Sequence record: MK568540.2
Strand: one strand, 5' to 3'
Length of the DNA: 64,000 nucleotides
A model generated the notes under the pieces. That model saw only the letters and a program-made list of their open reading frames with translations, did no database searches and was not told the origin of the DNA. Each line of letters starts with the position of its first letter. The first letter of the stretch is position 1. Below, in pieces: positions 19,740 through 32,465 of this stretch. Both the position numbers and the translations under genes were made by a program.

Positions 19740-19862
19740 CGAGTGTTGGTGTAGTGGCAGCACACGTAGCATACTGTAATCAGACATGATTATATTCAGC
19801 AACCAATTTACGCATATCATAGGGAGATCGTGGGAACGGTTCGATTCCGTTACACTCGACCA
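19740..19862 (+). ncRNA. tRNA-like RNA E1 with CAGCAA module inserted in the anticodon stem (loop ATAGGGA)
   Basis: Acceptor CGAGTGT/ACACTCG, D-arm, T-arm AACGG-TTCGATT-CCGTT, ACCA end; 49-nt insert after position 28; 21-bp leader/trailer duplex 19726-19872. Confidence 0.8.
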
Positions 19863-20121
19863 ATGTACTCTCACTAACAAAGCGAGGTGGACAATTTGAT
19901 TGTATATCTTCTCGCACTAGTATTCATCGTCCTTTTTGCCTTGGACATTGAAGAAGAAAAGGTGCGCATTCATACTTTTGCGCTAATCACATGCGAACGG
20001 GTCATTCATCCCGTAATTAAAGCGCACGATTCCAGATTGTGTTTTGATTAGCTAAGGCAAATATAACTAGAGGATTTTTGGTGCTTGTGGTTAATCACAA
20101 GCACTCTCAAGAACATATTGA

Positions 20122-20243
20122 GCAGGGTTGGTGTAGTGGCTAGCACACGTAGCATAAACGCAAGCTGTTAAGTTTGTATTCTGCAATCAATTTAGCATAT
20201 CATTTCCAAGATCGTGACGCAGGTTCGAATCCTGCACCCTGCT
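20122..20243 (+). ncRNA. tRNA-like RNA E2 with CTGCAA module (loop ATTTCCAA)
   Basis: Cloverleaf with insert after position 28; 17-bp extended acceptor duplex 20112-20252; no encoded CCA. Confidence 0.8.
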
Positions 20244-20260
20244 CAATATGTTTTTACATT

Positions 20261-20373
20261 GGTGAAGTTAGTTCAGTAGGTTAGAACGCCGGCCAAAAAA
20301 CGAAGTCTGATAAGATTTCATTCTGCATTCACATGCACGCCGGAGGTCGCAGGTTCGAGTCCTGCACTTCACC
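20261..20373 (+). ncRNA. tRNA-like RNA E3 with CTGCAT module in the anticodon loop
   Basis: GGTGAAGT/ACTTCACC acceptor, CCGGC/GCCGG anticodon stem, canonical T-arm. Confidence 0.8.
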
Positions 20374-20383
20374 TTCAAATTCT

Positions 20384-20508
20384 GGAGAGTTAGCTCAGTC
20401 TGGTAGAGCAAAAGAATGTTAAAGAATACTGACAAGCATTCATGCTGCAAACCTTAATAACTAGGTAAATCTTTTTGTCACGTGGTTCAAATCCCGTACT
20501 CTCCACCA
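20384..20508 (+). ncRNA. tRNA-like RNA E4 with CTGCAA module in the anticodon loop
   Basis: GGAGAGT/ACTCTCC-A-CCA, GCTC/GAGC D-stem, AAAGA/TCTTT anticodon stem. Confidence 0.8.
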
Positions 20509-20522
20509 ATTTTCGAGGGTTT

Positions 20523-20891
20523 ATGAATAAGTTTAATGACATAAATGACGAACTTGATTGTATATTGCATCGTTGTGAGATTGTAAAGCGCAATCTTCGA
20601 AAATATTGTACATTTGCTGTTGAAATGCAGTATAGACTTATGATAAACTTCATTGGCATGGGTTGCTATCAACAAGTTCTGCCGATATTAGACAATCTAA
20701 ATTATCACCCTGATACAAGTCAGTTTGATAATATTGAGATTATGCAAACTATAAAAGAATTGATGAAATGTGCAGATAAGCTCGATTTGCTGCATCAACA
20801 AGACGCATTTCATCAAATTAAATCGACTGCTCGTATTACAGAAGAAGCAAACATCTTCGCTGCGAAAGTTGGTCGATTTCTAGAGAAATGA
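20523..20891 (+). CDS. Hypothetical protein
   Basis: ATG 20523 after SD GAGG (the track's GTG start overlaps E4). Confidence 0.65.
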   Translation: MNKFNDINDELDCILHRCEIVKRNLRKYCTFAVEMQYRLMINFIGMGCYQQVLPILDNLNYHPDTSQFDNIEIMQTIKELMKCADKLDLLHQQDAFHQIKSTARITEEANIFAAKVGRFLEK

Positions 20892-20892
20892 T

Positions 20893-20970
20893 GGCCCTAT
20901 AGCTCAACACGGTTAGAGCAACCGACTCATAATCGGTAGGTTACAGGTTCGAGTCCTGTTGGGGTCACCA
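20893..20970 (+). tRNA. tRNA-Ile2/Met (CAT)
   Basis: Canonical cloverleaf, loop CTCATAA, CCA; GGCCC start like ileX. Confidence 0.92.
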
Positions 20971-20990
20971 AAATAAATTGAAAAAAGTTG

Positions 20991-21019
20991 TTGACAGACG
21001 TTTCATCAACGTGTAGTAT
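20991..21019 (+). promoter_or_regulatory. Early promoter
   Basis: AAAAAAGTTG-TTGACA-N17-TAGTAT. Confidence 0.8.
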
Positions 21020-21049
21020 ACACATTATCAACTACACGAGGAAAACATT

Positions 21050-21280
21050 ATGTCACATAAATTGCTAGTTATCACATCAATGCACGGTTGCTACGTCGAT
21101 TACGATTTCAGAACTGAAATGTTTGACAGATACATGTGTGATGTTGTGATTCCGAACGACTCTGTTGTTTTGTACTCGGGTACAGTTTCAATAGATGAAA
21201 TTCGAGCAGTTGCGAACGAATGTTACGCTGACATCAAGATTGAAGAAGTCAGTGATGATGTTTTTGACAGCTATCTTTAA
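21050..21280 (+). CDS. Hypothetical protein
   Basis: SD GAGGA; 76 aa. Confidence 0.7.
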   Translation: MSHKLLVITSMHGCYVDYDFRTEMFDRYMCDVVIPNDSVVLYSGTVSIDEIRAVANECYADIKIEEVSDDVFDSYL

Positions 21281-21284
21281 AAAT

Positions 21285-21524
21285 GCCGCTAACTGGCGTA
21301 CAATACACAGTGTATTCCCAACATTAGTGCAGACGTAGGCTCGCAACCTACGTTGGTACCGAATCACTGGGACCGAGTAGAAAGTGCATGTGAGATGTCG
21401 AAGTCTTGTATGTAGAAATAACGCTCGGCTGCTCTGAAATGCTGATTAGCTCTTACTTCGAAACTCTAATTGGGTGGAAGAGGTGTTGTGTTTGACGTGT
21501 GTTCGATTCACACGAGCGGCGCCA
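21285..21524 (+). ncRNA. tmRNA-shaped RNA (tRNA-like ends, ~190-nt internal domain)
   Basis: GCCGCT/AGCGGC-G-CCA acceptor; T-arm CGTGTG-TTCGATT-CACACG; long H2-like helix (ACAATAC/GTGTTGT, TTCC/GGAA, ATTAG/CTAAT). Confidence 0.65.
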
Positions 21525-21537
21525 AGAGGAAATTATA

Positions 21538-22059
21538 ATGAAACCATTGAAGTTCGTTGAGGCGTTCTCTAAAGAAGAACGTGCTGCTATGACGATTGAA
21601 GAACGTAGCAGACTTCGTAAAATATATAACGAACGCTATCAAGAGTATGTTGATAAGTACATCAATGTATTCACTCGAAAAGACTTTCGAAGAGAGCGTT
21701 GCTGGGTTATTCTTGCACGATGTAAAAAGACTGGTGAAATCATCGGTCGAATTGAAAATAGTTTTAGTATGGGATGGTCTAAAGAGCGTGTTCGTGTTAT
21801 TCGACCGTATCTAAACGGTAATTTCACGGGCGATGACCGCTTCTCTAAAGCTGAGTACAACAAAGCGTGTGCTGAGTACATAACTCATCATGAGAAACAA
21901 GTAAAGTCTCTCAGAGAAGCTTACAAAGACACTCACGACGTTTTCTTATCTCGTGTGGGTAGTAAGAACTGTCCTGTTTCTATTGATTGGGATACGTATT
22001 ACAGTAAAAAAGACAAACGAAACTTTGAATATCGAAATTTGAAATTCAAAGTTAAATAA
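21538..22059 (+). CDS. Hypothetical basic protein
   Basis: ATG 21538 after SD GAGGA. Confidence 0.7.
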   Translation: MKPLKFVEAFSKEERAAMTIEERSRLRKIYNERYQEYVDKYINVFTRKDFRRERCWVILARCKKTGEIIGRIENSFSMGWSKERVRVIRPYLNGNFTGDDRFSKAEYNKACAEYITHHEKQVKSLREAYKDTHDVFLSRVGSKNCPVSIDWDTYYSKKDKRNFEYRNLKFKVK

Positions 22060-22064
22060 TTCAT

Positions 22065-22180
22065 AGTCGGGTAGCTCAGTGGTAGAGCACGAAGAATGAT
22101 ACTGACAAGTATCGCTCCAGCACTCCTTCAATTGCCTGTTAAGCACGTGGTCGCTGGTTCGAATCCAGCCCCGACTACCA
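22065..22180 (+). ncRNA. tRNA-Asn(GTT)-like RNA E5 with a 41-nt CAGCAC module inserted between positions 28 and 29
   Basis: Removing the insert restores CGTGC-CTGTTAA-GCACG; acceptor AGTCGGG/CCCGACT-A-CCA. Confidence 0.85.
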
Positions 22181-22206
22181 TTTTTGATAAACTAGTGAGG
22201 TATAAC

Positions 22207-22443
22207 ATGAGCGGAACATTTAATATCAACAAAACGTTACTGACTCCGAAACAATTGCGCAATCTAACAGATGAGCGTCTGAATGAATATCGCAAGTCGT
22301 TTCGTAAGCCTCTTGGGTTTTTGAAGCATCTGAACGATACAAACGAATTGACTTCAGATCAGCACAAGAAATTCGTTGAGCTTAATAAGCACTACAACGA
22401 CGAAATTCTTGCTGAAATGAACAAGCGAAAACACTTAGGTTAA
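22207..22443 (+). CDS. Hypothetical protein
   Basis: ATG 22207 after SD GAGG; reads on the plus strand. Confidence 0.6.
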   Translation: MSGTFNINKTLLTPKQLRNLTDERLNEYRKSFRKPLGFLKHLNDTNELTSDQHKKFVELNKHYNDEILAEMNKRKHLG

Positions 22444-22556
22444 TAAAATCGCAGAAAATTGATAATTTTTTTCAATTTTCTGCGAAAATACCGCAAATCG
22501 TCAGATTTAGTGTTATAAGTACTATAAAGAAACAAAACAAATTTTAATTTTTATTT

Positions 22557-22681
22557 CAAGAGAGCATTCAATGACGCATTCGTTTACACATTCATCTGAG
22601 ACATTACGCAGCGATTTTCTGCGCTCAGAATTCGTGTATCTAGCGAATCCGATTGCGAACCAGAAGTGGGATACCCTCTTG
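22557..22681 (+). ncRNA. Orphan structured RNA
   Basis: Nested stems CAAGAG/CTCTTG, TACAC/GTGTA, CTGAG/CTCAG, CGCAG/CTGCG; followed by a terminator. Confidence 0.5.
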
Positions 22682-22713
22682 TAGTCCGATAGTATAACAT
22701 AGAAGTATACTTG

Positions 22714-22738
22714 AGGACGCAAATAGCGTCCTTTTTTT
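22714..22738 (+). terminator. Rho-independent terminator
   Basis: AGGACGC-AAATA-GCGTCCT followed by a T-run. Confidence 0.85.
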
Positions 22739-22815
22739 ATGGGCGTAAGAAAGTTAAGAAATTTTGTTTAACGTACTTTGATTACAGAGTATGATAAACA
22801 AAGTTAAAGAACAAA

Positions 22816-22889
22816 CGGGACGTGGCGTAAAGGTAGCGTTCATGCTTTGGGAGCATGTGGTAAGAGTTCGAGTCTCTTCGTCCCGACCA
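22816..22889 (+). tRNA. tRNA-Pro (TGG)
   Basis: Cloverleaf, loop TTTGGGA, CCA. Confidence 0.92.
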
Positions 22890-22898
22890 ATTTAAAAT

Positions 22899-22975
22899 CC
22901 GTGACTAGCTCAATCTGGTAGAGTACTCCGTTTGGGGCGGAGAAGTTAAGCGTTCGAATCGCTTGTCACGGACCA
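22899..22975 (+). tRNA. tRNA-Pro (TGG)
   Basis: Cloverleaf, loop TTTGGGG, CCA. Confidence 0.9.
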
Positions 22976-22982
22976 GTTTAAT

Positions 22983-23058
22983 GCCCGATTAGCTCAATTG
23001 GAAGAGCAGCGCCCTACGAAGGCGAAGGTTACAAGTTCGAATCTTGTATTGGGTGCCA
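22983..23058 (+). tRNA. tRNA-Arg (ACG)
   Basis: Cloverleaf, loop CTACGAA, CCA. Confidence 0.92.
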
Positions 23059-23261
23059 GTTAGTGTTGTTTGATTGAAGCTCGCTTTCGCACATTCCCGA
23101 AACTGCTTCTACGAATTGATACGCTTAGGACCGTATCTCGTTAAGTACTGTCGAGATGATAGAATTTAACGAACTTTTCATAAATTAGTGTTTATGATGT
23201 CTTGAGCGAGTGTTAATATTAACACATAGAAAATGAAAACGTTAAGTTCTTCAAAATAAAT

Positions 23262-23392
23262 TCAAAAAGATGTTTACAACGATATAAACATCGTGTACAA
23301 TGAAGAAAAGCGAAACATCATTCAAAATCGAATGAAAAGTTTTTCAAAAAAGATGTTTACAACGATAAAAACATCATGTACAATGAAGAAAA
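23262..23392 (+). promoter_or_regulatory. Duplicated strong early promoters
   Basis: Two near-identical ~48-bp copies: AAAAAGATG-TTTACA-N17-TACAAT-GAAGAAAAG (-35 boxes at 23273 and 23356). Confidence 0.85.
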
Positions 23393-23411
23393 GAAGTTTA
23401 CAAAATTTAAT

Positions 23412-23488
23412 GCGCAAGTAGCCCAATTGGCAGAGGCACTGGTCTTAGAAACCAGAAGTTAAGAGTTCGAATCTCTTCTTGCGTACCA
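23412..23488 (+). tRNA. tRNA-Leu (TAG), short variable loop
   Basis: Loop CTTAGAA; 5-nt variable region. Confidence 0.9.
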
Positions 23489-23489
23489 A

Positions 23490-23564
23490 GCACCCTTAGC
23501 TTATCAGGAAAAGCGGCGGATTGAAGTCCCGCAGTGCTCGGTTCGATTCCGAGGGGGTGCACCA
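23490..23564 (+). tRNA. tRNA-Phe (GAA)
   Basis: Loop TTGAAGT with an A31-C39 mismatch. Confidence 0.85.
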
Positions 23565-23653
23565 TATTATAGCTTGTTTGTAAGAGTTAAATCAAGCAAG
23601 GGGTTTTAGTTTTGGGTTATTTAGCAAACGCTCTTAACGTGAAAATCAAATCT

Positions 23654-23728
23654 GGGTCGTTCGTATAACGGTAGTACATCTGGCTTTTAACCAGACCGGT
23701 GAGAGTTCGAATCTCTTGCGACCCACCA
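23654..23728 (+). tRNA. tRNA-Lys (TTT)
   Basis: Loop CTTTTAA, CCA. Confidence 0.92.
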
Positions 23729-23739
23729 TATTTTATAAT

Positions 23740-23816
23740 GCGTCGGTAGCTCATCATGGAAGAGCAGGGAGCTTTTAACTCTCAGGTGTCTGGTTCGAGT
23801 CCAGGGCGGCGTACCA
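23740..23816 (+). tRNA. tRNA-Lys (TTT)
   Basis: Loop CTTTTAA, CCA. Confidence 0.9.
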
Positions 23817-23879
23817 AATTAGATACATTGTGTATCGCTTTGCAAGTTAGATAGCTTGCAAAGCAATATACAATTTAAT

Positions 23880-23954
23880 TCTCCCGTGGACTAACGGTAG
23901 GTCATCACCCTTTCAAGGTGAAGTGCGCGAGTTCGAATCTCGTCGGGAGAACCA
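23880..23954 (+). tRNA. tRNA-Glu (TTC)
   Basis: Loop CTTTCAA, CCA. Confidence 0.9.
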
Positions 23955-23960
23955 AATTAC

Positions 23961-24046
23961 GGAGCGTACGTCTCAAGGTGAGACAGGGGACTGTAAATCC
24001 CTGACCCTTAACGGGTAGAGAGGTTCGATTCCTCTACGCTCCACCA
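23961..24046 (+). tRNA. tRNA-Tyr (GTA)
   Basis: Loop CTGTAAA, long variable arm, CCA. Confidence 0.92.
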
Positions 24047-24051
24047 GTTTT

Positions 24052-24139
24052 AGCTTGCATACTGCAATTTAACTTAATCTATTGATCGCTCGGCGAACTC
24101 AGTTCAGACAGCGATAAACAGACCAAAGAACGCAAGCTG
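24052..24139 (+). ncRNA. Free-standing CTGCAA-motif RNA
   Basis: GCTTGC-ATA-CTGCAA ... GCAAGC-TG with inner ATCGCT/AGCGAT stem. Confidence 0.75.
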
Positions 24140-24148
24140 TTGAATAAT

Positions 24149-24225
24149 TGCGGGGTAGAGAAGTGGTCATCTCGTCGGTCTCATAAGCCGGAGAACGCTG
24201 GTTCGAATCCAGCCCCACGCAACCA
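24149..24225 (+). tRNA. tRNA-fMet-like (CAT)
   Basis: GCGGGG..TCGGT-CTCATAA; extra A in the acceptor 3' strand. Confidence 0.85.
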
Positions 24226-24271
24226 AATTTATTTCGACTAAATATTGTTTTACGCAATAAGGAAAATTACA

Positions 24272-24514
24272 ATGAAAACATTTGATGAATTCATTACCGA
24301 GTCGAAAGATGTTACTTTCGGAGTTTCTGGCTCACTTTTTAGTGGTGCAATGGATAGAGAGAGACATCGAAACATGATGCAAAAACTTGGCGCTGTTAGA
24401 GACACCAAATCAAAATCACAAGATAATGTTTGGGTTGTCAGTCAAGCGAATGCTGATGCAGTTGAAGAATATCTTAGTCAGTTTGATAAGCTGATGTGGG
24501 GTAGACACAAATAA
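24272..24514 (+). CDS. Putative internal head protein with capsid-targeting sequence
   Basis: Starts MKTFDEFITE (T4 CTS MKTYQEFIAE); CTAAATA late-like promoter at ~24238. Confidence 0.7.
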   Translation: MKTFDEFITESKDVTFGVSGSLFSGAMDRERHRNMMQKLGAVRDTKSKSQDNVWVVSQANADAVEEYLSQFDKLMWGRHK

Positions 24515-24520
24515 TTAATT

Positions 24521-24619
24521 GGAAGGCTTAGCCGAGAGATTCTGGGTAGCGGCAACGGTCTTGAAAACCGTCGGTCACCGGGAGGTGATGTTAGGGTTCG
24601 AATCCCTAGTCTTCCGCCA
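24521..24619 (+). tRNA. tRNA-Ser (TGA)
   Basis: Loop CTTGAAA, long variable arm, large D-loop, G73-CCA. Confidence 0.9.
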
Positions 24620-24683
24620 ATTAGTTAACCGGGAAGTTTAGTCACTTAACCGATTAACACGAGCACTGAAATGTGCTCACTTT

Positions 24684-24757
24684 AGTCCCTTAGCTCAACG
24701 GTAGAGCGTGCGACCGATAATCGCTTGGTAAGAGTTCGATTCTCTTAGGGACTACCA
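24684..24757 (+). tRNA. tRNA-Ile (GAT), C33
   Basis: Loop CCGATAA, CCA. Confidence 0.88.
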
Positions 24758-24763
24758 GATTTT

Positions 24764-24837
24764 AGGGGCATGATGTAAAGGCAGCATGACGGATTCCAAA
24801 CCCGTTCGTTAGAGTTCGAATCTCTATGCCCCTGCCA
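24764..24837 (+). tRNA. tRNA-Trp (CCA)
   Basis: Loop TTCCAAA, G73-CCA. Confidence 0.88.
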
Positions 24838-24842
24838 GTTTA

Positions 24843-24901
24843 AGTAATCTTACAGCAAACAATACAAAACTTTTATTTGGAAAAAGCAAAAAGGATTACT
24901 G
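24843..24901 (+). ncRNA. Minimal CAGCAA-motif RNA carrying an anticodon-like stem-loop
   Basis: GTAATC-TTA-CAGCAA ... CTTTT-ATTTGGA-AAAAG ... GATTAC-TG. Confidence 0.8.
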
Positions 24902-24912
24902 TTTAAATTCAA

Positions 24913-24987
24913 GGGTGTGTAACTCAGAGGCAGAGTAGTCGGCTGTTAACCGACAAGTCGAGATTTCGAAATTCTCCACGCCCGCCA
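24913..24987 (+). tRNA. tRNA-Asn (GTT)
   Basis: Loop CTGTTAA, CCA. Confidence 0.88.
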
Positions 24988-24988
24988 T

Positions 24989-25064
24989 GCTTCATTAACT
25001 CAGTTGGTAGAGTGTCTGACTGTTAATCAGAGAGTCGTTGGTTCGAGTCCAACATGAAGCGCCA
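24989..25064 (+). tRNA. tRNA-Asn (GTT)
   Basis: Loop CTGTTAA, CCA. Confidence 0.92.
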
Positions 25065-25132
25065 AATTCGGAGAGTCACTACCGTTAAGTGTGAACTTGA
25101 AAAACAAAGCAACTACTTTAAGTTGTCTTTGG

Positions 25133-25208
25133 GGAGCCGAGGTGTAAGTGGTTGCATGTCTCCCTGTCACGGAGAAGGTAGCGGGTTCGAAACCCGTCGG
25201 TTCCGCCA
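25133..25208 (+). tRNA. tRNA-Asp (GTC)
   Basis: Loop CTGTCAC, CCA. Confidence 0.92.
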
Positions 25209-25227
25209 AAGATAATTTAAGAACAAT

Positions 25228-25301
25228 TGGGGATTGGTGTAAAGGCAGCATAACGTACTTTGAATGCGTTGGTATCAGTTCGAATCTGTTATCCCCAGCC
25301 A
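25228..25301 (+). tRNA. tRNA-Gln (TTG)
   Basis: TGGGGAT start, loop CTTTGAA, CCA. Confidence 0.9.
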
Positions 25302-25310
25302 AATACCGAA

Positions 25311-25424
25311 GAGTGTTTTCAGCAAACAATTTACTAATATTCTTATCGGAAAGAAATGTTTAGGGTTCGATTCCCTTTCAGTGTTGGTATCACTGGTCTG
25401 GACGACGCTAGTAATAACACTCAG
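25311..25424 (+). ncRNA. Circularly permuted tRNA-like RNA closed by the CAGCAA motif (YrlA-like topology)
   Basis: Order: GAGTGT-TTT-CAGCAA, anticodon-like hairpin, T-arm AGGG-TTCGATT-CCCT, closed acceptor CAGTG/CACTG, D-like hairpin, ACACTC-AG. Confidence 0.8.
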
Positions 25425-25428
25425 TAAC

Positions 25429-25504
25429 GCCCTGATAGCACAACTGGCAGTGCAGCTCACTTGTAATGAGCAGGTTCGCGGTTCGAATCCGTGTCAGGGC
25501 ACCA
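25429..25504 (+). tRNA. tRNA-Thr (TGT)
   Basis: Loop CTTGTAA, CCA. Confidence 0.92.
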
Positions 25505-25528
25505 TTTTCAAACAACTGCGAGAATAAC

Positions 25529-25738
25529 ATGAACTATATTTCTGTATGGTGTGAATATGACATTGGTGGGGATTTCGGTGGCAACAATAACGAAGATGTT
25601 TTTTCCGTTAGTGAAGAATTATCTAATGAAGAAGTTGAAGCAAAAGTTGCTGAATATATTTCTGACATTGTTAGTGAGCCGATTGAAGAACTTGAAGGTT
25701 TATACGGTTGGGAATATATTTCAATCACACAGTTGTAA
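25529..25738 (+). CDS. Hypothetical acidic protein
   Basis: ATG 25529, MNYISVWCEY. Confidence 0.6.
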   Translation: MNYISVWCEYDIGGDFGGNNNEDVFSVSEELSNEEVEAKVAEYISDIVSEPIEELEGLYGWEYISITQL

Positions 25739-25745
25739 AAAATAT

Positions 25746-25820
25746 GGGCCGTTAGCTTAATTGGGAAAGCGCCTCACTTGCAATGAGGAAGATAGGGTTC
25801 GACTCCCTGCGTGTCCACCA
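25746..25820 (+). tRNA. tRNA-Ala (TGC)
   Basis: Loop CTTGCAA; irregular acceptor/T stems; CCA. Confidence 0.8.
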
Positions 25821-25894
25821 AATTTCGAACACATGAGCGTAGACTCTCTTTACTACCATCGTCTACACTAGTTCATGGTTCGAATCTTTTCAAT

Positions 25895-25970
25895 GCGCTG
25901 TTAGCTCAATTGGAAGAGCACGTCCCTTCTAAGGATGGGGTTATGAGTTCGAATCTCATACGGCGTGCCA
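25895..25970 (+). tRNA. tRNA-Arg (TCT)
   Basis: Loop CTTCTAA, CCA. Confidence 0.92.
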
Positions 25971-26266: not shown

Positions 26267-26485
26267 TAATTCGTCGGAAACGACACTGTAGCCGAAAGGC
26301 AAGATACGCTAACTTAGATGTTAGCAGCGATATAGGATGTATCGCGTGGCATTATTATGAACGTTTCTAGTCATCGTCATGTAAAACAATCAAAACTAAG
26401 CAGAGGTAACAGTACCCACTATGTGGTTCCTCACTCAGACCATGAATATATGGTGTCAGCCAGTGTGCGATTAAATGAGTTAATT
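26267..26485 (+). ncRNA. Orphan multi-hairpin RNA with GNRA loops
   Basis: GTCG-GAAA-CGAC, GCC-GAAA-GGC, GCTAAC/GTTAGC, GCGATA/TATCGC, ACCAT/ATGGT. Confidence 0.55.
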
Positions 26486-26494
26486 ACTGCAATT

Positions 26495-26570
26495 GGTGAT
26501 GTAGCTCAAGTGGCAGAGCAACGCTTTCATACGGCGTAAGATCCGATTTCGAGTATCGGTGTCACCTCCA
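26495..26570 (+). tRNA. tRNA-Met (CAT)
   Basis: Loop TTCATAC, T73-CCA. Confidence 0.85.
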
Positions 26571-26759
26571 AATTCAAAAACAAAGAGGTTACGAAGCATG
26601 ACTACTTTACACTAAGCAAGGGCAACATACGCGATAAAATTCGATATGTTGAAAAATGTCTCGCGAATGAGACCAACCCGTTCTTTATAAGAACACTTAC
26701 TGTAGAGCTTACGAATCTACGTGCAATACGTGATTTGTTTGACGCTTCAGATTAACAAT

Positions 26760-26833
26760 GCGGGTATGATGTAATGGTAGCATGACGTCCTTCCAAGTCG
26801 TTCGTCTCGGTTCGAGTCCGTGTACCCGCTCCA
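26760..26833 (+). tRNA. tRNA-Gly (TCC)
   Basis: GCGGGTA start, loop CTTCCAA, T73-CCA. Confidence 0.9.
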
Positions 26834-26839
26834 AATTTT

Positions 26840-26913
26840 GGTCCCTTAGTATAATGGCAGTACGTCTCTTTTACACAGAGAAAGAAGTGGCTCGATTCCA
26901 CTAGGGACTACCA
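26840..26913 (+). tRNA. tRNA-Val (TAC)
   Basis: Loop TTTACAC, CCA. Confidence 0.88.
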
Positions 26914-26936
26914 TTCTTTATTATGAGAAATAAATT

Positions 26937-27176
26937 ATGACTCCTGTATTACTTGAAACTCACGAATACGTAAACCCGAATCAAATTGAAAAGCTTCAAC
27001 GCATGGACAGACTTATGTTTGACTGTTGGCGCGCTGGGTTTAAGCGTAACAAGATTCTTGAGCGTGCTCTTGAAATTGAGTCTTCAACGACTGAAGCAGA
27101 TATCGAAATTTATTTCAAAAACATGTTTACAAGAGAACTATCGCCTGATAGAATCTACTTAAAGAAAACTGATTAA
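26937..27176 (+). CDS. Hypothetical protein
   Basis: 79 aa ORF with SD-like GAGA. Confidence 0.65.
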   Translation: MTPVLLETHEYVNPNQIEKLQRMDRLMFDCWRAGFKRNKILERALEIESSTTEADIEIYFKNMFTRELSPDRIYLKKTD

Positions 27177-27302
27177 TGCACAGGAAGCGCATTCGTTTGA
27201 TGTCGTAAACATCCCAAAGTATTGCAGGTAGCGACGGCGGTGTTGCTAGTAGATTTATCTATTTCTCCAAGACATAATGCAAACTTTTAAGTGTACTTTG
27301 GT

Positions 27303-27379
27303 GTGGCAGTGGGTGAAGTGGAAATACCCCCGGGTTGTGATTCCGGAAGATGCGGGTTCGATCCCCGTCTGTCACCCCA
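27303..27379 (+). tRNA. tRNA-His (GTG)
   Basis: Loop TTGTGAT, C73-CCA. Confidence 0.88.
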
Positions 27380-27391
27380 AAGTACATTTAT

Positions 27392-27465
27392 GCTCGAATC
27401 GTATAATGGAAGTATGACGGATTGCAAATCCGCAGGTCAGGGTTCGATTCCCTGTTCGAGCTCCA
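27392..27465 (+). tRNA. tRNA-Cys (GCA)
   Basis: Loop TTGCAAA, T73-CCA. Confidence 0.9.
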
Positions 27466-27467
27466 AT

Positions 27468-27544
27468 GCGCACGTGGTCCAATTGGCAGAGGCATGAGGC
27501 TTAAAATCTCAGGGATGGCGGTTCGAATCCGCCCGTGCGTACCA
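27468..27544 (+). tRNA. tRNA-Leu (TAA), short variable loop
   Basis: Loop CTTAAAA; 5-nt variable region. Confidence 0.9.
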
Positions 27545-27548
27545 AATT

Positions 27549-27649
27549 CTAGCATAAGCCGCGTTCTATACGAAGCTAGACTACCGCCGTTGAAAAACGG
27601 TCTCAGCCGAGCGAAAGCTGACAGGTGTTAGGGATTAAAGAGTCGCGGC
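27549..27649 (+). ncRNA. Pseudoknotted orphan RNA
   Basis: TCTAGC/GCTAGA crossed by GCCGCG/CGCGGC; inner GCCGTT-GAAA-AACGGT and TCAGC/GCTGA. Confidence 0.55.
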
Positions 27650-27660
27650 AGTTTATTCAA

Positions 27661-27737
27661 GCCCAACTAGTCCAATTGGCAGAGGCACTAGTTTCAAACA
27701 CTAGGAGTTCCGAGTTCGAATCTCGGGTTGGGCACCA
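27661..27737 (+). tRNA. tRNA-Leu (CAA), short variable loop
   Basis: Loop TTCAAAC; 5-nt variable region. Confidence 0.9.
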
Positions 27738-27743
27738 AATTCA

Positions 27744-27868
27744 CTTAGCAACGCGAATCGAAAGAGAGTGGATAGACCTGCTAAGAGTCCCGCTAGGTCT
27801 TTAAATTATCTAAAGTGGATCTGCGAAGCGCGTGGCACACGTCAGCAATAAGAGCAAATATGTGTCTG
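27744..27868 (+). ncRNA. Pseudoknot followed by a minimal CAGCAA-motif hairpin
   Basis: CTTAGC/GCTAAG crossed by AGACCT/AGGTCT; then GGCACA-CGT-CAGCAA...TGTGTC-TG (27834-27868). Confidence 0.65.
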
Positions 27869-27905
27869 AGCATGAGAGCAGCATGCCATTAATTGATGAG
27901 ACGTT

Positions 27906-27994
27906 GGAAGCATGGTCTAAAGGTATGACAGCACCCTGCTAAGGTGTCGGACGTTAATAGCGTTCTCTGGGTTCGATTCCCAGTGCTTCCGCCA
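27906..27994 (+). tRNA. tRNA-Ser (GCT)
   Basis: Loop CTGCTAA, long variable arm, G73-CCA. Confidence 0.92.
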
Positions 27995-27999
27995 AATTC

Positions 28000-28260
28000 G
28001 CAATAAGACATTGTACAGCAATCATTACAAAATCAAAGCAAACTTTAATAGTAATGAGGCGCACTAGCTGCTTTCTCAGTGATGACGTGAGCCTGTCGCA
28101 TTCTCATGGTAGGAAATGACCATTAAGACGGTGTTCGTACTGTCAAACGAAATAGGACTCATGCCGAATCATGAGTATTTTTCCGATGAGAAACATCGTT
28201 ATAGTCAATTGAGATTTAAGGAAAGACGATAAAACATTTCTCGAATGTCTGTGTATTGCA
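28000..28260 (+). ncRNA. Large CAGCAA-motif RNA L2
   Basis: GACATT-GTA-CAGCAA ... AATGTC-TG, outer GCAATA/TATTGC stem, many hairpins, 3' block shared with L1. Confidence 0.8.
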
Positions 28261-28266
28261 CATTAG

Positions 28267-28290
28267 AACCTGCCTTGAGCAGGTTTTTTT
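28267..28290 (+). terminator. Terminator ending the RNA island
   Basis: AACCTGC-CTTGA-GCAGGTT followed by a T-run. Confidence 0.85.
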
Positions 28291-28380
28291 GTTTATGGCG
28301 TTTGATAATTGATATAGTCTAAAGAAACAGTTAGATATGATTCTAAATACAGATGAACTCAAATCAATTGGAGAAATGTC

Positions 28381-28587
28381 ATGAGTGATAAAACATTCGA
28401 TAAGTTCATGTTAGAACTAGAAGAACAAAAGCCAGAAGATAAAAAGAAAAAGAAACGTTCAGTAAAAGATCGTGTCAAGTCTGGTGCAAAGAAAGCTGGT
28501 AAAGCTGCGAAAACTGGTGCTAAAGTAGCCGCTGGTGCTGCTGCGGTAGGTCTTGCAACTCAAGTAACAAAGAAATCTAACGAATAA
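28381..28587 (+). CDS. Lys/Ala-rich small protein, putative internal head protein
   Basis: MSDKTFDKFMLELEE CTS-like start; late-like CTAAATA at 28344. Confidence 0.65.
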   Translation: MSDKTFDKFMLELEEQKPEDKKKKKRSVKDRVKSGAKKAGKAAKTGAKVAAGAAAVGLATQVTKKSNE

Positions 28588-28814
28588 TGAAGAACATTCA
28601 TCAAAAGTCTCATGCTCGTGAAGGGCGTGGTTCTGGTAATGGGCACAATGAAAATTGGCGCAATGCACCTCTTTGGAAGAACATTGGTCCCAATGCTGAA
28701 AAGATTAAAAAGGAAGCAGAAGCCGCAGAGAAAGACGAAGAGATTGATAAACCCAATCTCGATGAGTTATCGCAGCGTGAGCGTATGCGCCGTTTACAAA
28801 GCATAGCGCATTAA
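28587..28814 (+). CDS. Hypothetical protein
   Basis: Translationally coupled (TAATG) 75 aa ORF. Confidence 0.6.
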   Translation: MKNIHQKSHAREGRGSGNGHNENWRNAPLWKNIGPNAEKIKKEAEAAEKDEEIDKPNLDELSQRERMRRLQSIAH

Positions 28815-28838
28815 TCTGAATTGGCGTAACTTCTCAGT

Positions 28839-28884
28839 GGGAGATATGTGGTCAAGGCAATAGGTTCGATTCCTGTGTCTCCCG
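28839..28884 (+). ncRNA. Armless mini-tRNA (acceptor plus T-arm only)
   Basis: GGGAGAT/GTCTCCC, ATAGG-TTCGATT-CCTGT; no D or anticodon arm; no CCA. Confidence 0.55.
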
Positions 28885-28912
28885 TATTCTATTAACTAAG
28901 AGGTGAGCAATC

Positions 28913-29125
28913 ATGGAAATACTTTCTGAAGAAACACTAAAAAGCATGGAATTGTCTGAAGTTTGCAAAGTACGCAAAACGCTTAATAAATTTATTGCAC
29001 GTCTGCGCAAAGATTTTCGAGACTTTCAATGTAACCGAGTTGATGAGAAATATTATAAAGAACATCTTATGTACTCCACGATTGTAGATCGAATGATCGA
29101 AAAAAAGTTACGCCATTCACACTAA
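28913..29125 (+). CDS. Hypothetical protein
   Basis: SD GAGGT; 70 aa. Confidence 0.65.
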   Translation: MEILSEETLKSMELSEVCKVRKTLNKFIARLRKDFRDFQCNRVDEKYYKEHLMYSTIVDRMIEKKLRHSH

Positions 29126-29126
29126 C

Positions 29127-29152
29127 AAAAAAGCCCCAATTAAGGGGCTTTT
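29127..29152. terminator. Bidirectional terminator (same core at 49360 and 60428)
   Basis: AAAAAAGCCCC-AATTAA-GGGGCTTTT between convergent genes. Confidence 0.85.
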
Positions 29153-29156
29153 ATTT

Positions 29157-29528
29157 TTATAGCTTATGTTGAATCATTAGCTCATGTAAACCTTCAACTG
29201 CAAAATCATTCAGCCTATCTAGCTCGACATCTAACTTGTCCATTGCCATTCTTAGTTCATCACTAATACCTTTCTTATAGCGTAGCTTATTGATCAGCCT
29301 CTTCGCGTCTAACACGTTCATCTTGATGTGTTCGTAATTATATCGCACTGCTTCATATCGATATTTGTTTTGCTTGGCTTTCTGTTCGATATGCAACAAT
29401 TTAGTGTGCATCTTGGCTAGTTTCTTAATGCTGCGCGAGTCAGCCCCTGCTTTGTATCTAGACCATTGTCTTTCAAACCAACCTTCGTTTAGGTACTCTT
29501 CAAAAGATTTTATTTTTTCGTCATTCAT
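29157..29528 (-). CDS. Putative internal head protein
   Basis: KIKSFEEYLNE CTS-like start; GATAAATA late-like promoter at 29562-29569 (minus). Confidence 0.65.
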   Translation of the reverse strand: MNDEKIKSFEEYLNEGWFERQWSRYKAGADSRSIKKLAKMHTKLLHIEQKAKQNKYRYEAVRYNYEHIKMNVLDAKRLINKLRYKKGISDELRMAMDKLDVELDRLNDFAVEGLHELMIQHKL

Positions 29529-29593
29529 GTGTTGACTTCCTGTTGTTAAACCTGTATCATGTATTTATCGGAAATAACTAACGAGAATTTACT

Positions 29594-29941
29594 ATGTTTG
29601 TAATGATTGATGATATGCGTGATATCGATAAGTTCACTGCGCCTGAAATTTCCGCAGATCAGAAGCTTGTTTTGCGTACGTATGAAGACGGTATGAAATT
29701 CGTCAAACATACGAATCTTACAGATATTACTTTATTCATGGACAATGATCTAGGCGGTGCTCTTGGTCATGAGGGATATGATATTCTCTCTCATGCAATT
29801 GATCATCGTAACTTCCCACGCACAGTTGTTCTAGTAACGAGTAACCCTGTTGCTCACTCTAAGATGACTATGATGTTGATGAGTACACTTCAATATAAAC
29901 GTGTGGGTTCTATCTTTATGAGGCAAGATACATGCACTTAA
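29594..29941 (+). CDS. Cyclic-phosphate-processing receiver-like domain protein
   Basis: VMIDDMR and FMDNDLG...EGYDIL, V..SNPVA pattern; early promoter TTGACT-N17-TATCAT at 29532. Confidence 0.65.
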   Translation: MFVMIDDMRDIDKFTAPEISADQKLVLRTYEDGMKFVKHTNLTDITLFMDNDLGGALGHEGYDILSHAIDHRNFPRTVVLVTSNPVAHSKMTMMLMSTLQYKRVGSIFMRQDTCT

Positions 29942-30297
29942 ACGTAATTTCTGCTGCTGCAAATGCAATTAGAGTCACTTTACCAAATGGCGAAGAGAGG
30001 GATATTGTTGTTGCAGATAGCTGCCATTTTGGTCGAAACATGCAAGGCGTGTTTAAGCTATTGAAAGAACTTGGCTGTACATATGAACATCGAAGCGAAC
30101 TTGGTGATCGTGGGCAGGGATTCATCAATTATTGTGGTGAATACTTCAATCGCGCTGATGCTTATGAACTCGCGAAAGAAAGCGGTCAACCATTCAATGA
30201 TGGGTACACGCTACCAGATATTGACGGTGATGGTCGTCCTCGTCTCGATAGTTCATGCATTCGACATTTTTCAAAACCAATTAAGGAATATCTATGA
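29932..30297 (+). CDS. Hypothetical protein
   Basis: QGFINYCGEYFNRADAYELA motif, seen in small phage proteins. Confidence 0.7.
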   Translation: MHLNVISAAANAIRVTLPNGEERDIVVADSCHFGRNMQGVFKLLKELGCTYEHRSELGDRGQGFINYCGEYFNRADAYELAKESGQPFNDGYTLPDIDGDGRPRLDSSCIRHFSKPIKEYL

Positions 30298-30629
30298 GCA
30301 ATCTATATGATATTTTAACTCAACGAGTCAAGCAGAATCGTTCAAAACGCGAAGAATTGTTCGTCGTTGAAATGCGTAAATCAATTGAGCGTAAGATCGG
30401 TGGTGTTTCGGGATTTCAGTTCCCGATTACGATTCAAGTTAATCTTGAACGAAATGAATGTTGTGATGAAATGATGACTCTCATCAAGAGTGTCATGCGA
30501 CGTGAGGGATTTCACAATTTCGATGCACAGTTCGGTCATTATTCTGGCGACCCTCGTGATGTGAGAGACTATTCATATTCTTTTGTGAAATTGACAATTC
30601 GAGAAAATAAACAAGCGGGGTTTCAATGA
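30294..30629 (+). CDS. Hypothetical protein
   Basis: Coupled ORF; weakly similar to the next ORF. Confidence 0.65.
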   Translation: MSNLYDILTQRVKQNRSKREELFVVEMRKSIERKIGGVSGFQFPITIQVNLERNECCDEMMTLIKSVMRREGFHNFDAQFGHYSGDPRDVRDYSYSFVKLTIRENKQAGFQ

Positions 30630-30940
30630 TGCTTAGTCATGACGAACTTTCAAAACAAATTAATCAACGAGAGCAAATAGCTCGTAAAGTTCTTAGCGAA
30701 CATTATAATGCCGAGTGTGAAAAAGAATTCACACATGCAGTTGAAAACGGGGCTTTTTTCCCGATTAAAATCAAAGTACCAATTCACATTAGTGATTGTG
30801 ATAAGAAAGGTTCTGGTTTCATTCGTGCATTCTTCGAACAGCATGGCTACCGAAATTTACGCACTTGCTATGAATCTGGTGGTTATGTATCTGTTGAAAT
30901 ATTCAAAAATGGTACGAATATCAGTCGTCATTATCGATAA
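30626..30940 (+). CDS. Hypothetical protein
   Basis: Coupled ORF. Confidence 0.65.
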   Translation: MMLSHDELSKQINQREQIARKVLSEHYNAECEKEFTHAVENGAFFPIKIKVPIHISDCDKKGSGFIRAFFEQHGYRNLRTCYESGGYVSVEIFKNGTNISRHYR

Positions 30941-30951
30941 ATTAAAAAAGT

Positions 30952-30980
30952 GTTTACATGCATTAAAATTCGCGTATAAT
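30952..30980 (+). promoter_or_regulatory. T4-type early promoter of the DUF2828 gene
   Basis: AAAAAAGT-GTTTAC-N17-TATAAT. Confidence 0.8.
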
Positions 30981-30992
30981 CACTTCATCAAA

Positions 30993-31035
30993 GACATTTT
31001 ACAGCAATTAATTATGAGGAAATGAACAATGTCAG
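30993..31035 (+). promoter_or_regulatory. CAGCAA motif enclosing the SD and pairing with the start codon of the DUF2828 gene
   Basis: GACATT-TTA-CAGCAA-...GAGG...-AATGTC-AG; the ATG at 31029 lies in the 3' strand. Confidence 0.85.
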
Positions 31036-32465
31036 TATTTATGAACGCAATGCAAACAAACGATTCACGCACAGCAAACGGTGCAGTTACTCACAGCACT
31101 TCAGGTAACGAGTGTCTAAACTTGTTCTTCGGTATTGCTGCTATGCGTGGCAACGATCAGTCTAAAACACTGTTCGGTCGTGCGTTTGCAGAAAACCCAG
31201 AACTAGCGACTCGCATTCTTTTGTGGTCTCGTGATGTTCGAGGTGGTGCGGGTGAACGTGGTACTTTCCGTACTCTATTCACTAAACTTTGTAATGAACA
31301 GCCTGACGTAGCTCGTGCTGTAATGTCGAAAATTCCAGAACTAGGTCGTTACGATGACTTGATTTCTGCTTTCGGTACACGTCTTGAAAAAGATGCGATT
31401 ACAATGTGGTCGAACGCAATTGTCAATGACAAGAATGGTCTTGCTGCGAAGTGGTTCCCACGTGAAAACAGCAAAAACGGTCATGTGTTCAAGCGCACAA
31501 TCAAGTCTCTTGGCGTAACTGCGAAGCAGTGGCGTAAGATTCTGTCGCTTCTGTCTGACACTGTTGAGCAGAAGATGTGTGCGCAAAAATGGGATGCAAT
31601 CGACTTCGGTAAGTTGCCTTCTGTAGCGTCTGCTCGTTATCAACAAGCATTCGGTCGTAACGCTTCAACACGTTACACAAACTACATCGAGTCACTTCAA
31701 AAAGGTGAAGCGAAGATCAACGCTGGCGCATTGTTCCCATACGATGTCGTTAAGAGCGTTAGTCACGGTAATGCGTCTGTAGCGAACGAGCAATGGAAAG
31801 CTCTGCCAAACTACATGGAAGGTTCTGATGAACGCATCATCCCTGTTGTTGACGTGTCTGGCTCTATGAGCACGCCAATTAACGCAGGTACAGACCGTTC
31901 AGGTGTGACTTGTAAGCAAGTTGCAATGTCTCTTGGGATTTATGTTGCTGAACGCAATGAAGGCATCTTCAAAGATCAGTTCATTTCGTTCTCAAGCGAC
32001 CCGCACTTCCACCAGTTGCGCGGCTCTTCATTGAAAGAGCGTCTTGATAACATGAATCGTTCAGGCGAAGACATGAGTACGAACATCGGTAAGTGCTTTG
32101 ATGTTCTGCTAGAGCGTGCGAAGCGTGCAAATCTTTCACAAGAAGATATGCCAACCAAGTTGCTTATCATGAGTGACATGGAATTCGATCAAGCAAACAC
32201 TGGTGGTGGTTGGTACGGTCGCGGTGAACCTGCGAACTTCGATGCAATCAAAGCCAAGTACGCACGTGCTGGTTATGAAATGCCACAACTGGTCTTCTGG
32301 AACATTCGTGGTCGTCTTGGCAACGTTCCGGTTAAAGCTGGTGAAGCGGGTACTGCACTGGTATCTGGTTGTAGCCCATCTATCTTGACTTCACTGTTGG
32401 GTGGTGAGCTTGAGCCAATCAAGATCATGATGAAAACTGTAGGCGTCGAACGCTACAGCTTTTAA
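31029..32465 (+). CDS. DUF2828-type TROVE/Ro60-like protein with C-terminal vWA domain
   Basis: T.NGA..HSTSG..CL.LF, RDVRGGAGER, IPELGRYDDL, AKWFPR; vWA MIDAS DVSGSM, ST, LIMSDMEFD, VFWN. Confidence 0.8.
   Translation: MSVFMNAMQTNDSRTANGAVTHSTSGNECLNLFFGIAAMRGNDQSKTLFGRAFAENPELATRILLWSRDVRGGAGERGTFRTLFTKLCNEQPDVARAVMSKIPELGRYDDLISAFGTRLEKDAITMWSNAIVNDKNGLAAKWFPRENSKNGHVFKRTIKSLGVTAKQWRKILSLLSDTVEQKMCAQKWDAIDFGKLPSVASARYQQAFGRNASTRYTNYIESLQKGEAKINAGALFPYDVVKSVSHGNASVANEQWKALPNYMEGSDERIIPVVDVSGSMSTPINAGTDRSGVTCKQVAMSLGIYVAERNEGIFKDQFISFSSDPHFHQLRGSSLKERLDNMNRSGEDMSTNIGKCFDVLLERAKRANLSQEDMPTKLLIMSDMEFDQANTGGGWYGRGEPANFDAIKAKYARAGYEMPQLVFWNIRGRLGNVPVKAGEAGTALVSGCSPSILTSLLGGELEPIKIMMKTVGVERYSF

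Follow-up and report, generated by a model that had tools for sequence, protein, structure and literature searches.

This report concerns a set of short RNA elements, and the gene that accompanies them, in a 64,000-nucleotide stretch of sequence record MK568540.2 (hereafter, the window). The source region is identical to the KVP40-like Vibrio phage Va3 and has 87 % identity to KVP40, a T4-related Schizotequatrovirus. Between positions 19740 and 32465 lie a tRNA island, in which ARAGORN recognizes 28 tRNAs (20893-27994), and the gene 31029-32465, the product of which carries the Pfam domains DUF2828 and DUF7788. The Rfam tRNA model also covers three over-long genes (20262-20373, 20384-20505 and 22065-22177) which, in the same order, are annotated in KVP40 as tRNA-Pseudo-5, -4 and -3. 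Spread through this region, and reaching the start codon of the gene, are copies of a motif composed of a short helix and a single-stranded signature. A first-pass annotation of the DNA listed 12 such sites and proposed that the phage encodes a divergent Ro60-like ring protein with Y-like RNAs of its own. Combining the window with orthologous islands and with homologous loci from other phages and from bacterial contigs, this report assesses that proposal and finds it likely for 11 of the 12 sites.

Motif RNAs of the tRNA island

All 12 sites lie at the positions first reported, except that one begins at 28007 rather than 28008. In 11 of them the motif consists of a 6-bp helix opening with a G-C pair, a 3-nt spacer of the form N-U-N and a C-N-G-C-A core; the base 5' of the helix G is usually A, and the partner strand always ends in C followed by UG or AG. 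The proposed geometry, with its exact spacing and partner ending, holds for these 11 sites. The core, first given as C(A/T)GCA(A/T/C), stands as C-N-G-C-A, its N being usually A or U; CGGCAA is found in orthologues of A2.

The accepted copies fall into two classes. In class A (19788, 20172, 20314, 20436 and 22109), the partner lies directly upstream and is joined to the G strand by a six-base loop, usually UGNNAA, forming a capped hairpin in the anticodon arm of a tRNA-like gene. In class B (24053, 24844, 25311, 26035, 28007 and 30993), the G strand comes first, the partner follows 20-220 nt downstream and the helix closes an open-ended RNA; five of these RNAs are located between tRNAs and one (30993) is in the leader of the gene. 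The two classes are related by circular permutation, in that the class A loop, C-UG-NN-AA-G, equals the class B flanks (A|G...C|UG) joined by two bases. The features are as follows.

19726-19872, + strand: A1, tRNA-like RNA in which D- and T-arms accompany a terminal stem of 21 bp.
19776-19802, + strand: A1 hairpin, GTAATC-AGACAT-GATTAT followed by ATT-CAGCAA, which replaces the anticodon arm and covaries in the F86 and K566 orthologues.
20109-20255, + strand: A2, paralogue of A1 with a 20-bp terminal stem.
20160-20186, + strand: A2 hairpin, GCAAGC-TGTTAA-GTTTGT followed by ATT-CTGCAA; orthologues have the helix GATTC/GAATC and the core CGGCAA.
20262-20376, + strand: A3, tRNA-like (KVP40 tRNA-Pseudo-5), its anticodon loop enlarged by an insert of 45 nt.
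20302-20328, + strand: A3 hairpin, GAAGTC-TGATAA-GATTTC followed by ATT-CTGCAT, with orthologues.
20384-20508, + strand: A4, tRNA-like (KVP40 tRNA-Pseudo-4), CCA end encoded; matches the Rfam tRNA model over 122 nt (50.1 bits).
20424-20450, + strand: A4 hairpin, GAATAC-TGACAA-GCATTC followed by ATG-CTGCAA, with one A-C mismatch.
22065-22180, + strand: A5, tRNA-like (KVP40 tRNA-Pseudo-3), with an encoded CCA end; Rfam tRNA, 49.8 bits.
22097-22123, + strand: A5 hairpin, TGATAC-TGACAA-GTATCG followed by CTC-CAGCAC.
24053-24139, + strand: B1, open-ended RNA between tRNA-Tyr and tRNA-Met; GCTTGC ATA CTGCAA ... GCAAGC TG.
24844-24901, + strand: B2, open-ended RNA of about 58 nt between tRNA-Trp and tRNA-Asn; GTAATC TTA CAGCAA ACAAUAC ... 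GATTAC TG.
25311-25424, + strand: B3, tRNA-like RNA with the terminal helix GAGTGT/ACACTC, then AG, and with TTT-CAGCAA at the place of the D-arm.
26035-26262, + strand: B4, probable open-ended RNA of about 228 nt; GACAAT ATA CAGCAA ... ATTGTC TG.
28007-28251, + strand: B6, open-ended RNA of about 245 nt after tRNA-Ser; GACATT GTA CAGCAA ... AATGTC TG.
30993-31035, + strand: B7, leader copy; GACATT TTA CAGCAA, a 20-nt loop with the Shine-Dalgarno sequence GAGG, then AATGTC AG.
31029-32465, + strand: gene for the predicted Ro60-like protein (478 aa), with an N-terminal helical-repeat DUF2828 and a C-terminal vWA domain, DUF7788.

The hexamer core by itself is not enriched in the island (21 observed, 19.6 expected). 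The full geometry, GNNNNNNTNCWGCAA, occurs 11 times in the window compared with 4.6 +/- 2.1 times in shuffled sequence, where none of 100 shuffles reaches 11; nine of these 11 copies of GNNNNNNTNCWGCAA are on the + strand within the 11 kb from 19788 to 30993. The open-ended RNAs were also scored with R1, a covariance model trained on 26 short RNAs that include B2 and exclude B1. Its only match in the window outside the island is on the minus strand, with 11.3 bits and E = 2.8.

R1 recovers B1 with the helix placed correctly (22.5 bits, E 0.004), and B1 is conserved in four phages. B2, with 51 bits as a member of the training set, is homologous by alignment to a short RNA 3' of the gene in marine phages. 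B3, which also contains a T-arm that covaries and two hairpins, one anticodon-like and one extra, obtains 19.9 bits with its 3' partner misplaced, and similar RNAs occur in loci L010, L041, L043 and L073. For B4 the R1 score is weak (13 bits); its partner and TG are kept about 205-230 nt downstream in KVP40, V09, VS2, nt-1, PVA8 and K566, and D479 has a one-sided G-U change with no compensatory change. B6 (19.3 bits) is followed by an intrinsic terminator-like hairpin (28267-28290), a layout like that of the marine loci, which have a long RNA plus a terminator; nhmmer finds no similarity between B6 and the marine long RNAs outside the motif. Among the tRNA-like genes, A3 matches the Rfam tRNA model with 56.3 bits over 112 nt and has a fold z-score of -3.5, and the architecture of A5 is also found in locus L072 and in Cronobacter phage S13. 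A5 has a second conserved hairpin (22134-22150, +), the 7-nt loop of which, CUGUUAA, is the anticodon-loop sequence of tRNA-Asn; its stem shows a compensatory change in D479, and the hairpin is present in L072, with L009 listed alongside.

The remaining site, 27834-27866 (+; GGCACA CGT CAGCAA ... TGTGTC TG), is probably not a member and was rejected, because its CGT spacer lacks the U and its core varies in orthologues (CTGGCAA, CAGCGA); R1 gives no match there at E<=10. Around it is a conserved structured segment (27790-27905, +) with the nested helices GTGGCA...TGCCAC and GACACA.../TGTGTC, which may be a separate small RNA. A further candidate at 22449-22497 (+), in which a strong hairpin is followed by AAAUA-CCGCAA, was not accepted, its spacer being too long. 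That hairpin, very stable with 14 bp and a z-score of -6.3, comes after the open reading frame 22096-22443.

Conservation and covariation of the helix

Covariation is out of reach of one genome and was therefore sought in the orthologous island of nine related vibriophages, down to 71-75 % overall identity, in which every accepted site is kept. In the class A hairpin, 96.7 % of cells are paired over 30 distinct sequences and all six pairs show compensatory change, compared with 29-42 % pairing in slid controls and with no match in 500 shuffles; the second loop base (G), the middle base of the spacer (U) and the core C-N-G-C-A are invariant. The B2 helix covaries as well (GTAATC/GATTAC, GCAATC/GATTGC and GGATAC/GTATCC; PVA8, V09 and D479). 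In the R1 alignment of the open helix, which was itself fitted to that model, 7 of 7 pairs are compensatory, with 82 cells vs 27 in shuffles (0/500). The class A hairpins, B2 and the open-helix alignment together show that the helix is maintained by compensatory change, as expected from the initial observation that its sequence varies while pairing is kept.

These data bear on the possibility that sites 1-5 are decaying pseudo-tRNAs or intron-bearing tRNAs, with the hairpin as the remnant of a mobile insertion and the other sites as chance look-alikes. KVP40 tRNA-Pseudo-3, -4 and -5 are the same loci as A5, A4 and A3, the Rfam tRNA model spans A3-A5 with a large insert, other records give intron-bearing tRNA-Asn, -Val or -Ile, and homing endonuclease genes occur in the islands. 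However, while the KVP40 annotation implies defective tRNAs, the comparative data reveal a conserved, covarying inserted module, which is kept with compensatory changes down to the lowest identities compared and is also present in L072 and S13. ARAGORN calls A1-A5 only in intron mode and with inconsistent anticodons, for which reason the intron reading was dropped, and no group I intron or ribozyme family matches. Measured against canonical tRNA (RF00005; 5-bp anticodon stem, 7-nt loop), A3-A5 reach 50-56 bits only with an insert of 40-50 nt, the hairpin of which has 6 bp and a 6-nt loop; reading UGNNAA as part of a 7-nt anticodon loop was rejected, because the register shift breaks the helix. 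Since the open-ended copies are, moreover, independently conserved and co-occur with the gene elsewhere, pseudo-tRNAs are a highly improbable explanation of the motif.

The protein encoded by gene 31029-32465

Ro60, the TROVE protein, binds Y RNA on its outer surface and the ends of misfolded RNA in its central hole. Pfam finds only DUF2828 and DUF7788 in the product of 31029-32465, with no match to the TROVE model, and PHROG 850 is named 'RNA-binding protein'. Across 30 homologues the MIDAS-type DxSxS motif of the vWA domain (D275-x-S277-x-S279) is invariant, as are many basic residues. An AF2 (AlphaFold2) model from 30 homologues (pLDDT 77, pTM 0.74) predicts, with moderate confidence, a ring of alpha-helical (HEAT-like) repeats closed by the C-terminal vWA domain. 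When the model was compared with the Protein Data Bank (PDB) by Foldseek, the best 11 matches were all Ro60 (phage phiLo, Deinococcus Rsr, Xenopus and human), extending over the full length (505-575 columns, TM 0.48-0.56, probability 1.0), and the next were isolated vWA domains. As modelled, the product is a remote Ro60-type ring protein, and the structural comparison favours the divergent ring that had been proposed.

The family is widespread, with homologues in 711 of 50,697 phage records (~1.4 %) and among >7,000 metagenomic proteins. Carriers include Felixounavirus, Listeria P100-like, Campylobacter, Staphylococcus and Mycobacterium phages as well as bacteria-assigned contigs, and Pfam DUF2828 is reported from plants. 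The protein side is partly known already, in that annotators use the terms 'RNA-binding' or 'Ro-like'.

Co-occurrence of the motif and the gene

From IMG/VR, 80 viral loci were obtained, of which 69 were left after de-duplication. A strict scan of the 80 loci gives 117 motif-plus-partner matches on the gene strand vs nine on the opposite strand. In 61 of the 69 de-duplicated contigs, a motif is found <=700 nt downstream of the gene on the same strand, compared with 3-9 of 69 in the controls (nine on the opposite strand, seven inside the gene, 3-8 after shuffling), and half of the eight loci without a downstream motif carry upstream copies. A search with R1 over 1.12 Mb, reaching ~6 kb into each flank, yields 65 matches at E<=0.05, all on the gene strand and mostly straight after the stop codon; nearly all matches adjoin the gene. 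The link between motif and DUF2828, put forward from a single genome, therefore recurs across genomes.

In L011, a contig from the European Nucleotide Archive (ENA) with 53 % protein identity, the gene, a short RNA (GGTTCC-GTT-CAGCAA...GGAACC-TG), a long RNA (GGATCG-GTA-CAGCAA, ~220 nt, CGATCC-CG) and a terminator form an operon-like series; the 10 kb to each side of the gene are free of tRNAs. The motif is also beside homologues of 31-49 % identity in FelixO1 (four copies between tRNAs, e.g. GACCAA-TTA-CAGCAA...TTGGTC-TG), Campylobacter phage CPX, Listeria phage P100 (three tandem copies, with TAA or ACA as spacers), Mycobacterium phage MsGreen (two copies) and Cronobacter phage S13 (two capped and one open), and it adjoins homologues in contigs assigned to Chloroflexi, cyanobacteria, Lentisphaeria and Johnsonella, the last a metagenome-assembled genome. 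Eight neighbour proteins from the window were compared with all loci by tblastn, and in the viral-contig loci none of them recurs beside the gene, except in VH7D (L013), which is near-identical to the window, and in L055, where a single RNase H-like match is 4.3 kb off. Together, these data show that the RNAs and the gene constitute a two-part module that is co-inherited across very different phages and some bacterial contigs. Same-strand co-occurrence and helix covariation agree with the earlier suggestion that the protein has its own RNAs, in several topologies.

Other RNAs were seen near some homologues. In Listeria phage P100 (L095), a near-threshold match to ROOL RNA (968-1519; 86 bits vs a cut-off of 99) sits between tRNAs upstream of the homologue, and a tmRNA match is located a few kb from the gene in L075 (11822-12178; 66.2 bits, above the cut-off) and L091 (10279-10638; 44.4 vs 47).

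The prevalence of tRNAs around the motif in the window raises the question of whether it is a processing or stability signal of the island transcript, read by a host or phage ribonuclease or by a host chaperone, with the gene merely situated beside tRNA clusters. Ten copies are within the tRNA island, several of them beginning a few bases past a tRNA 3' end, the copies in FelixO1 are likewise between tRNAs, and the conserved flanks, A|G and C|UG, might be points of cleavage. The marine loci, however, have RNAs straight after the gene and no tRNA within 10 kb, the motif is present in the leader of the protein's own gene, and the R1 matches in the flanks cluster at the gene as described. As the motif follows the gene in hosts ranging from Vibrio to Listeria to Mycobacterium, a common host factor is unlikely, and a processing signal is an improbable account of the RNAs.

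The leader copy

In B7, the partner strand overlaps the ATG (31029-31031), and the boxes TTTACA (30953-30958) and TATAAT (30975-30980) are upstream. The helix is the minimum-energy fold but a weak one (-4.2 kcal/mol), which suggests that bound protein is needed to hold it. B7 is conserved in six vibriophages, and equivalent leader hairpins are found just 5' of the Shine-Dalgarno sequence in L041, L051, L057 and L061, making five lineages with the window; the overlap with the start codon noted at the outset is thus a recurrent arrangement. To judge from the sequence, this layout is that expected for autogenous repression by ligand mimicry. Autogenous operators that mimic an RNA ligand include the Escherichia coli ThrRS leader and those of T4 RegA and gp32. 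As in those cases, a copy of the ligand element covers the ribosome-binding region of the protein's own mRNA; unlike in those cases, repression is suggested here by position and conservation alone. In L043 (3267-3381) and in L073, tRNA-like motif RNAs are located 5' of the gene, with the T-arm before a D-arm-like segment in a YrlA-like permuted order, and their 3' strand runs right up to the ribosome-binding site.

Comparison with known Ro60 and Y RNA systems

Bacteria and phages are known to encode Ro60 beside Y RNAs (PMC4201824, PMC12135203), and YrlA RNAs have the sequence GNCGAAN0-1G near the 5' end as well as a tRNA-like domain (PMC4201824). The present system resembles bacterial Ro60 (Rsr) and its Y RNAs (YrlA, YrlB, Yrn1; the Ro60-Y RNA-PNPase machine) in combining a helical-repeat ring with a vWA domain, in having small RNA(s) encoded beside the gene on the same strand, and in the make-up of those RNAs, i.e. 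a terminal stem, followed near the 5' end by a short, conserved hexamer rich in purines, and, often, a tRNA-like module. The stem with the putative protein-binding site is formed by the 5' and 3' ends of the RNA in B1-B4, B6 and the marine RNAs and is a capped internal arm in A1-A5; as to the tRNA-like module, A3-A5 pass the Rfam tRNA threshold and A1, A2 and B3 carry T-arms. In contrast to bacterial Ro60, the DUF2828 protein is undetectable as TROVE by sequence. The RNAs differ from YrlA in their signature, helix/N-U-N/CWGCAA in place of GNCGAAN0-1G, and from bacterial Y RNAs in general in that some copies are a capped arm in an otherwise normal tRNA fold and in that one genome may hold as many as eleven RNAs in addition to the leader copy.

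In searches of Rfam, the YrlA model (RF02553; gathering threshold 69 bits) attains at best 32 bits in the window and 39.3 in MsGreen and has no match in marine or Bacteroidota-type loci. Scans of the window, the marine and Bacteroidota-type loci and five isolated phages yield no Y_RNA or TD-1, their relevant matches being limited to tRNA and weak YrlA, and no characterized family matches the motif RNAs at either gathering or permissive thresholds. The comparison with YrlA confirms that the core is distinct from the GNCGAA of known bacterial Y RNAs, as the first-pass annotation had it; the resemblance to TD-1 that it mentioned is not upheld, there being no TD-1 match at E<=10 in 19300-32600. 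In the second MsGreen RNA, a full-length match to the YrlA tRNA-like domain (39 bits, below threshold) is enclosed by the helix GGACCC/GGGTCC with CCA-CAGCAA, and there is no GNCGAA stem. The presence of a YrlA-type module inside a CAGCAA helix suggests that the adaptor is common to the two systems and the binding module different. A ~240-nt marine long RNA (L011, 11510-11755), strongly conserved and with homologues in L014-L034, holds the internal heptamers GUCGAAG and GCCGAAG, which fit the canonical YrlA motif GNCGAAG.

Thermus phage phiLo similarly encodes a Ro60 ring and two adjacent Y-like RNAs, Yrl1 and Yrl2 (PMC12135203), and its Ro60 (PDB 9KOP, 9L5Y) is the best structural match to the AF2 model; it differs in being a recognized TROVE protein, with ~15 % identity to the window protein, and in having RNAs with a CGAA motif. 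The Felixounavirus Bas63 protein gp130, which is Ro60-like by structure and encoded directly upstream of tRNA genes, is reported to counter the Ppl defence (10.1101/2024.10.10.617714, preprint). By itself, whether plasmid-borne or inserted in T7, gp130 allowed T7 to form plaques again on cells with Ppl; the authors also conjectured that Y RNAs are among the 'tRNA' genes beside the Felixounavirus gene (10.1101/2024.10.10.617714). That preprint identifies no RNA partner or motif. The FelixO1 homologue, also upstream of tRNA genes, has 45 % identity to the window protein, and because this gene-plus-tRNA block is kept in 248 records, gp130 probably belongs to the DUF2828 family.

No paper describing the motif was found in the literature. 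What appears to be new is the class of RNA, together with the signature by which it would be recognized, the three arrangements it takes and its link to DUF2828. What was first called a new system is therefore new, it appears, on the RNA side, whereas the annotation of the protein and the guess of Y RNAs pre-exist.

Proposed roles of the RNAs and the protein

It is likely that the eleven motif RNAs are cognate Y-RNA-like ligands of the divergent Ro60-type DUF2828/DUF7788 ring protein. The protein would recognize the helix together with its unpaired signature, much as the conserved stem of Y RNA is bound by Ro60. The remainder of each RNA would be a variable adaptor: in A1-A5 and B3 an entire tRNA-like body, in B2 a loop rich in A and U, and in B4 and B6 an extended structured domain. 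Such an adaptor could present the particle to tRNA-handling enzymes, repair enzymes or exoribonucleases. In class A, the UGNNAA loop would cap the binding helix, leaving the acceptor stem of the tRNA as the open end, whereas in class B the binding helix would itself be open. The leader copy would give the mRNA of the protein itself a binding site that overlaps the region where ribosomes attach, allowing excess free protein to repress translation. More speculatively, the particle may act in RNA surveillance or counter-defence during infection. The decoy against anticodon nucleases suggested in the first-pass annotation gains no support from these data. The broader hypothesis, that helix/N-U-N/CWGCAA RNAs are widespread Y-RNA analogues and specific ligands of the whole DUF2828/DUF7788 family, with interchangeable adaptors, a part in counter-defence and self-control through the leader, is put forward with more hesitation, as a somewhat favoured view.

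In another reading, the RNAs are part of the same module but would be bound by a different factor, for instance an RNA ligase, a repair enzyme or a tRNA-modifying enzyme, with the Ro60-like protein acting on other RNAs. A cREC receiver-domain protein and a 2H-type 'RNA ligase' are encoded nearby in the window, P100 has RtcB, L011 has an RNA ligase with a kinase-like gene, and gp130 works in T7 without phage RNAs. Yet the RNA recurs in almost all of the viral-contig loci and the neighbours from the window do not (VH7D and L055 excepted), and the leader copy is best understood as a site for the protein encoded behind it. Binding by such a different factor is thus considered unlikely.

Several observations weigh against the ring protein as the partner of the RNAs. 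On the protein side, the AF2 model is of moderate quality (pLDDT 77, TM about 0.5), and a profile search against PDB sequences gives no link to Ro60, phiLo Ro60 matching with E = 1.2 over 40 residues. On the RNA side, the helix is short (6-7 bp), and RNAalifold returns no consensus structure for the short-RNA alignment, for which reason the helix was assessed by pair counting and with the covariance model. Among the vibriophages, the helices of B4, B6 and B7 keep their position but do not vary, and so lend no covariation support of their own; in stability, the B7 helix does not exceed shuffled sequence. The searches used a motif that had already been defined, a circularity that the strand, position and shuffle controls lessen, though not fully. 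Finally, the identification of gp130 as a DUF2828 homologue is by genus membership and gene position and is not sequence-based, and the RNAs may be dispensable for anti-Ppl activity, gp130 alone sufficing; since the protein was enough in T7, the RNAs may instead regulate or redirect it.

Other features of the island

Immediately 5' of A1 is a segment of ~145 nt (19578-19726, +) that is closed by a ~15-bp terminal stem (UUUAAAUGUGCG.../...CGCACAUUUAAA) and has a minimum free energy of -44 kcal/mol and a z-score of -3.2; the motif is absent from it, and Rfam has no matching family. Early-promoter-like boxes (AAAAAGTTGTTGACTTA ... TAGAAT or TAAGAT) are repeated at 19330-19440 and 20975-21030 (+), some of them followed by stem-loops, and resemble the promoter/stem-loop cassettes of T4-type phages; they probably drive transcription of the island. 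A tRNA-like gene missed by ARAGORN (25746-25817, +; Rfam tRNA 44.9 bits) corresponds to KVP40 tRNA-Pseudo-1, and tRNA-Ser(UGA) at 24534-24619 (+; segment 24521-24619) has an odd 5' region and a sub-threshold match to tRNA-Sec. Flanking the island are genes for RNA-repair-type proteins (18620-19075, 29594-29941 and 32509-33039, all +). They comprise a 2H phosphoesterase resembling gp57B, which PHROG names 'RNA ligase', a protein with a cREC receiver domain, of the kind linked to processing of cyclic phosphates, and a PF04308 protein of RNase H-like type; the PF04308 protein is also encoded 3' of the DUF2828 gene in L010.

Implications

The conserved inserted module accounts for the long-standing 'pseudo-tRNA' annotations in KVP40-like and related phages, and the motif RNAs would supply the RNA side for a phage protein reported to defeat the Ppl defence. 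The motif, being short and defined, offers a simple signature for locating such RNAs in genomes, and the hypothesis is directly testable. If the RNAs are indeed ligands of the protein, then a domain-of-unknown-function family found in about 1.4 % of sequenced phages would have gained an RNA ligand, and Ro-type rings would have evolved a second RNA recognition code, one that is displayed on an open stem, on a capped tRNA arm and in an mRNA leader.

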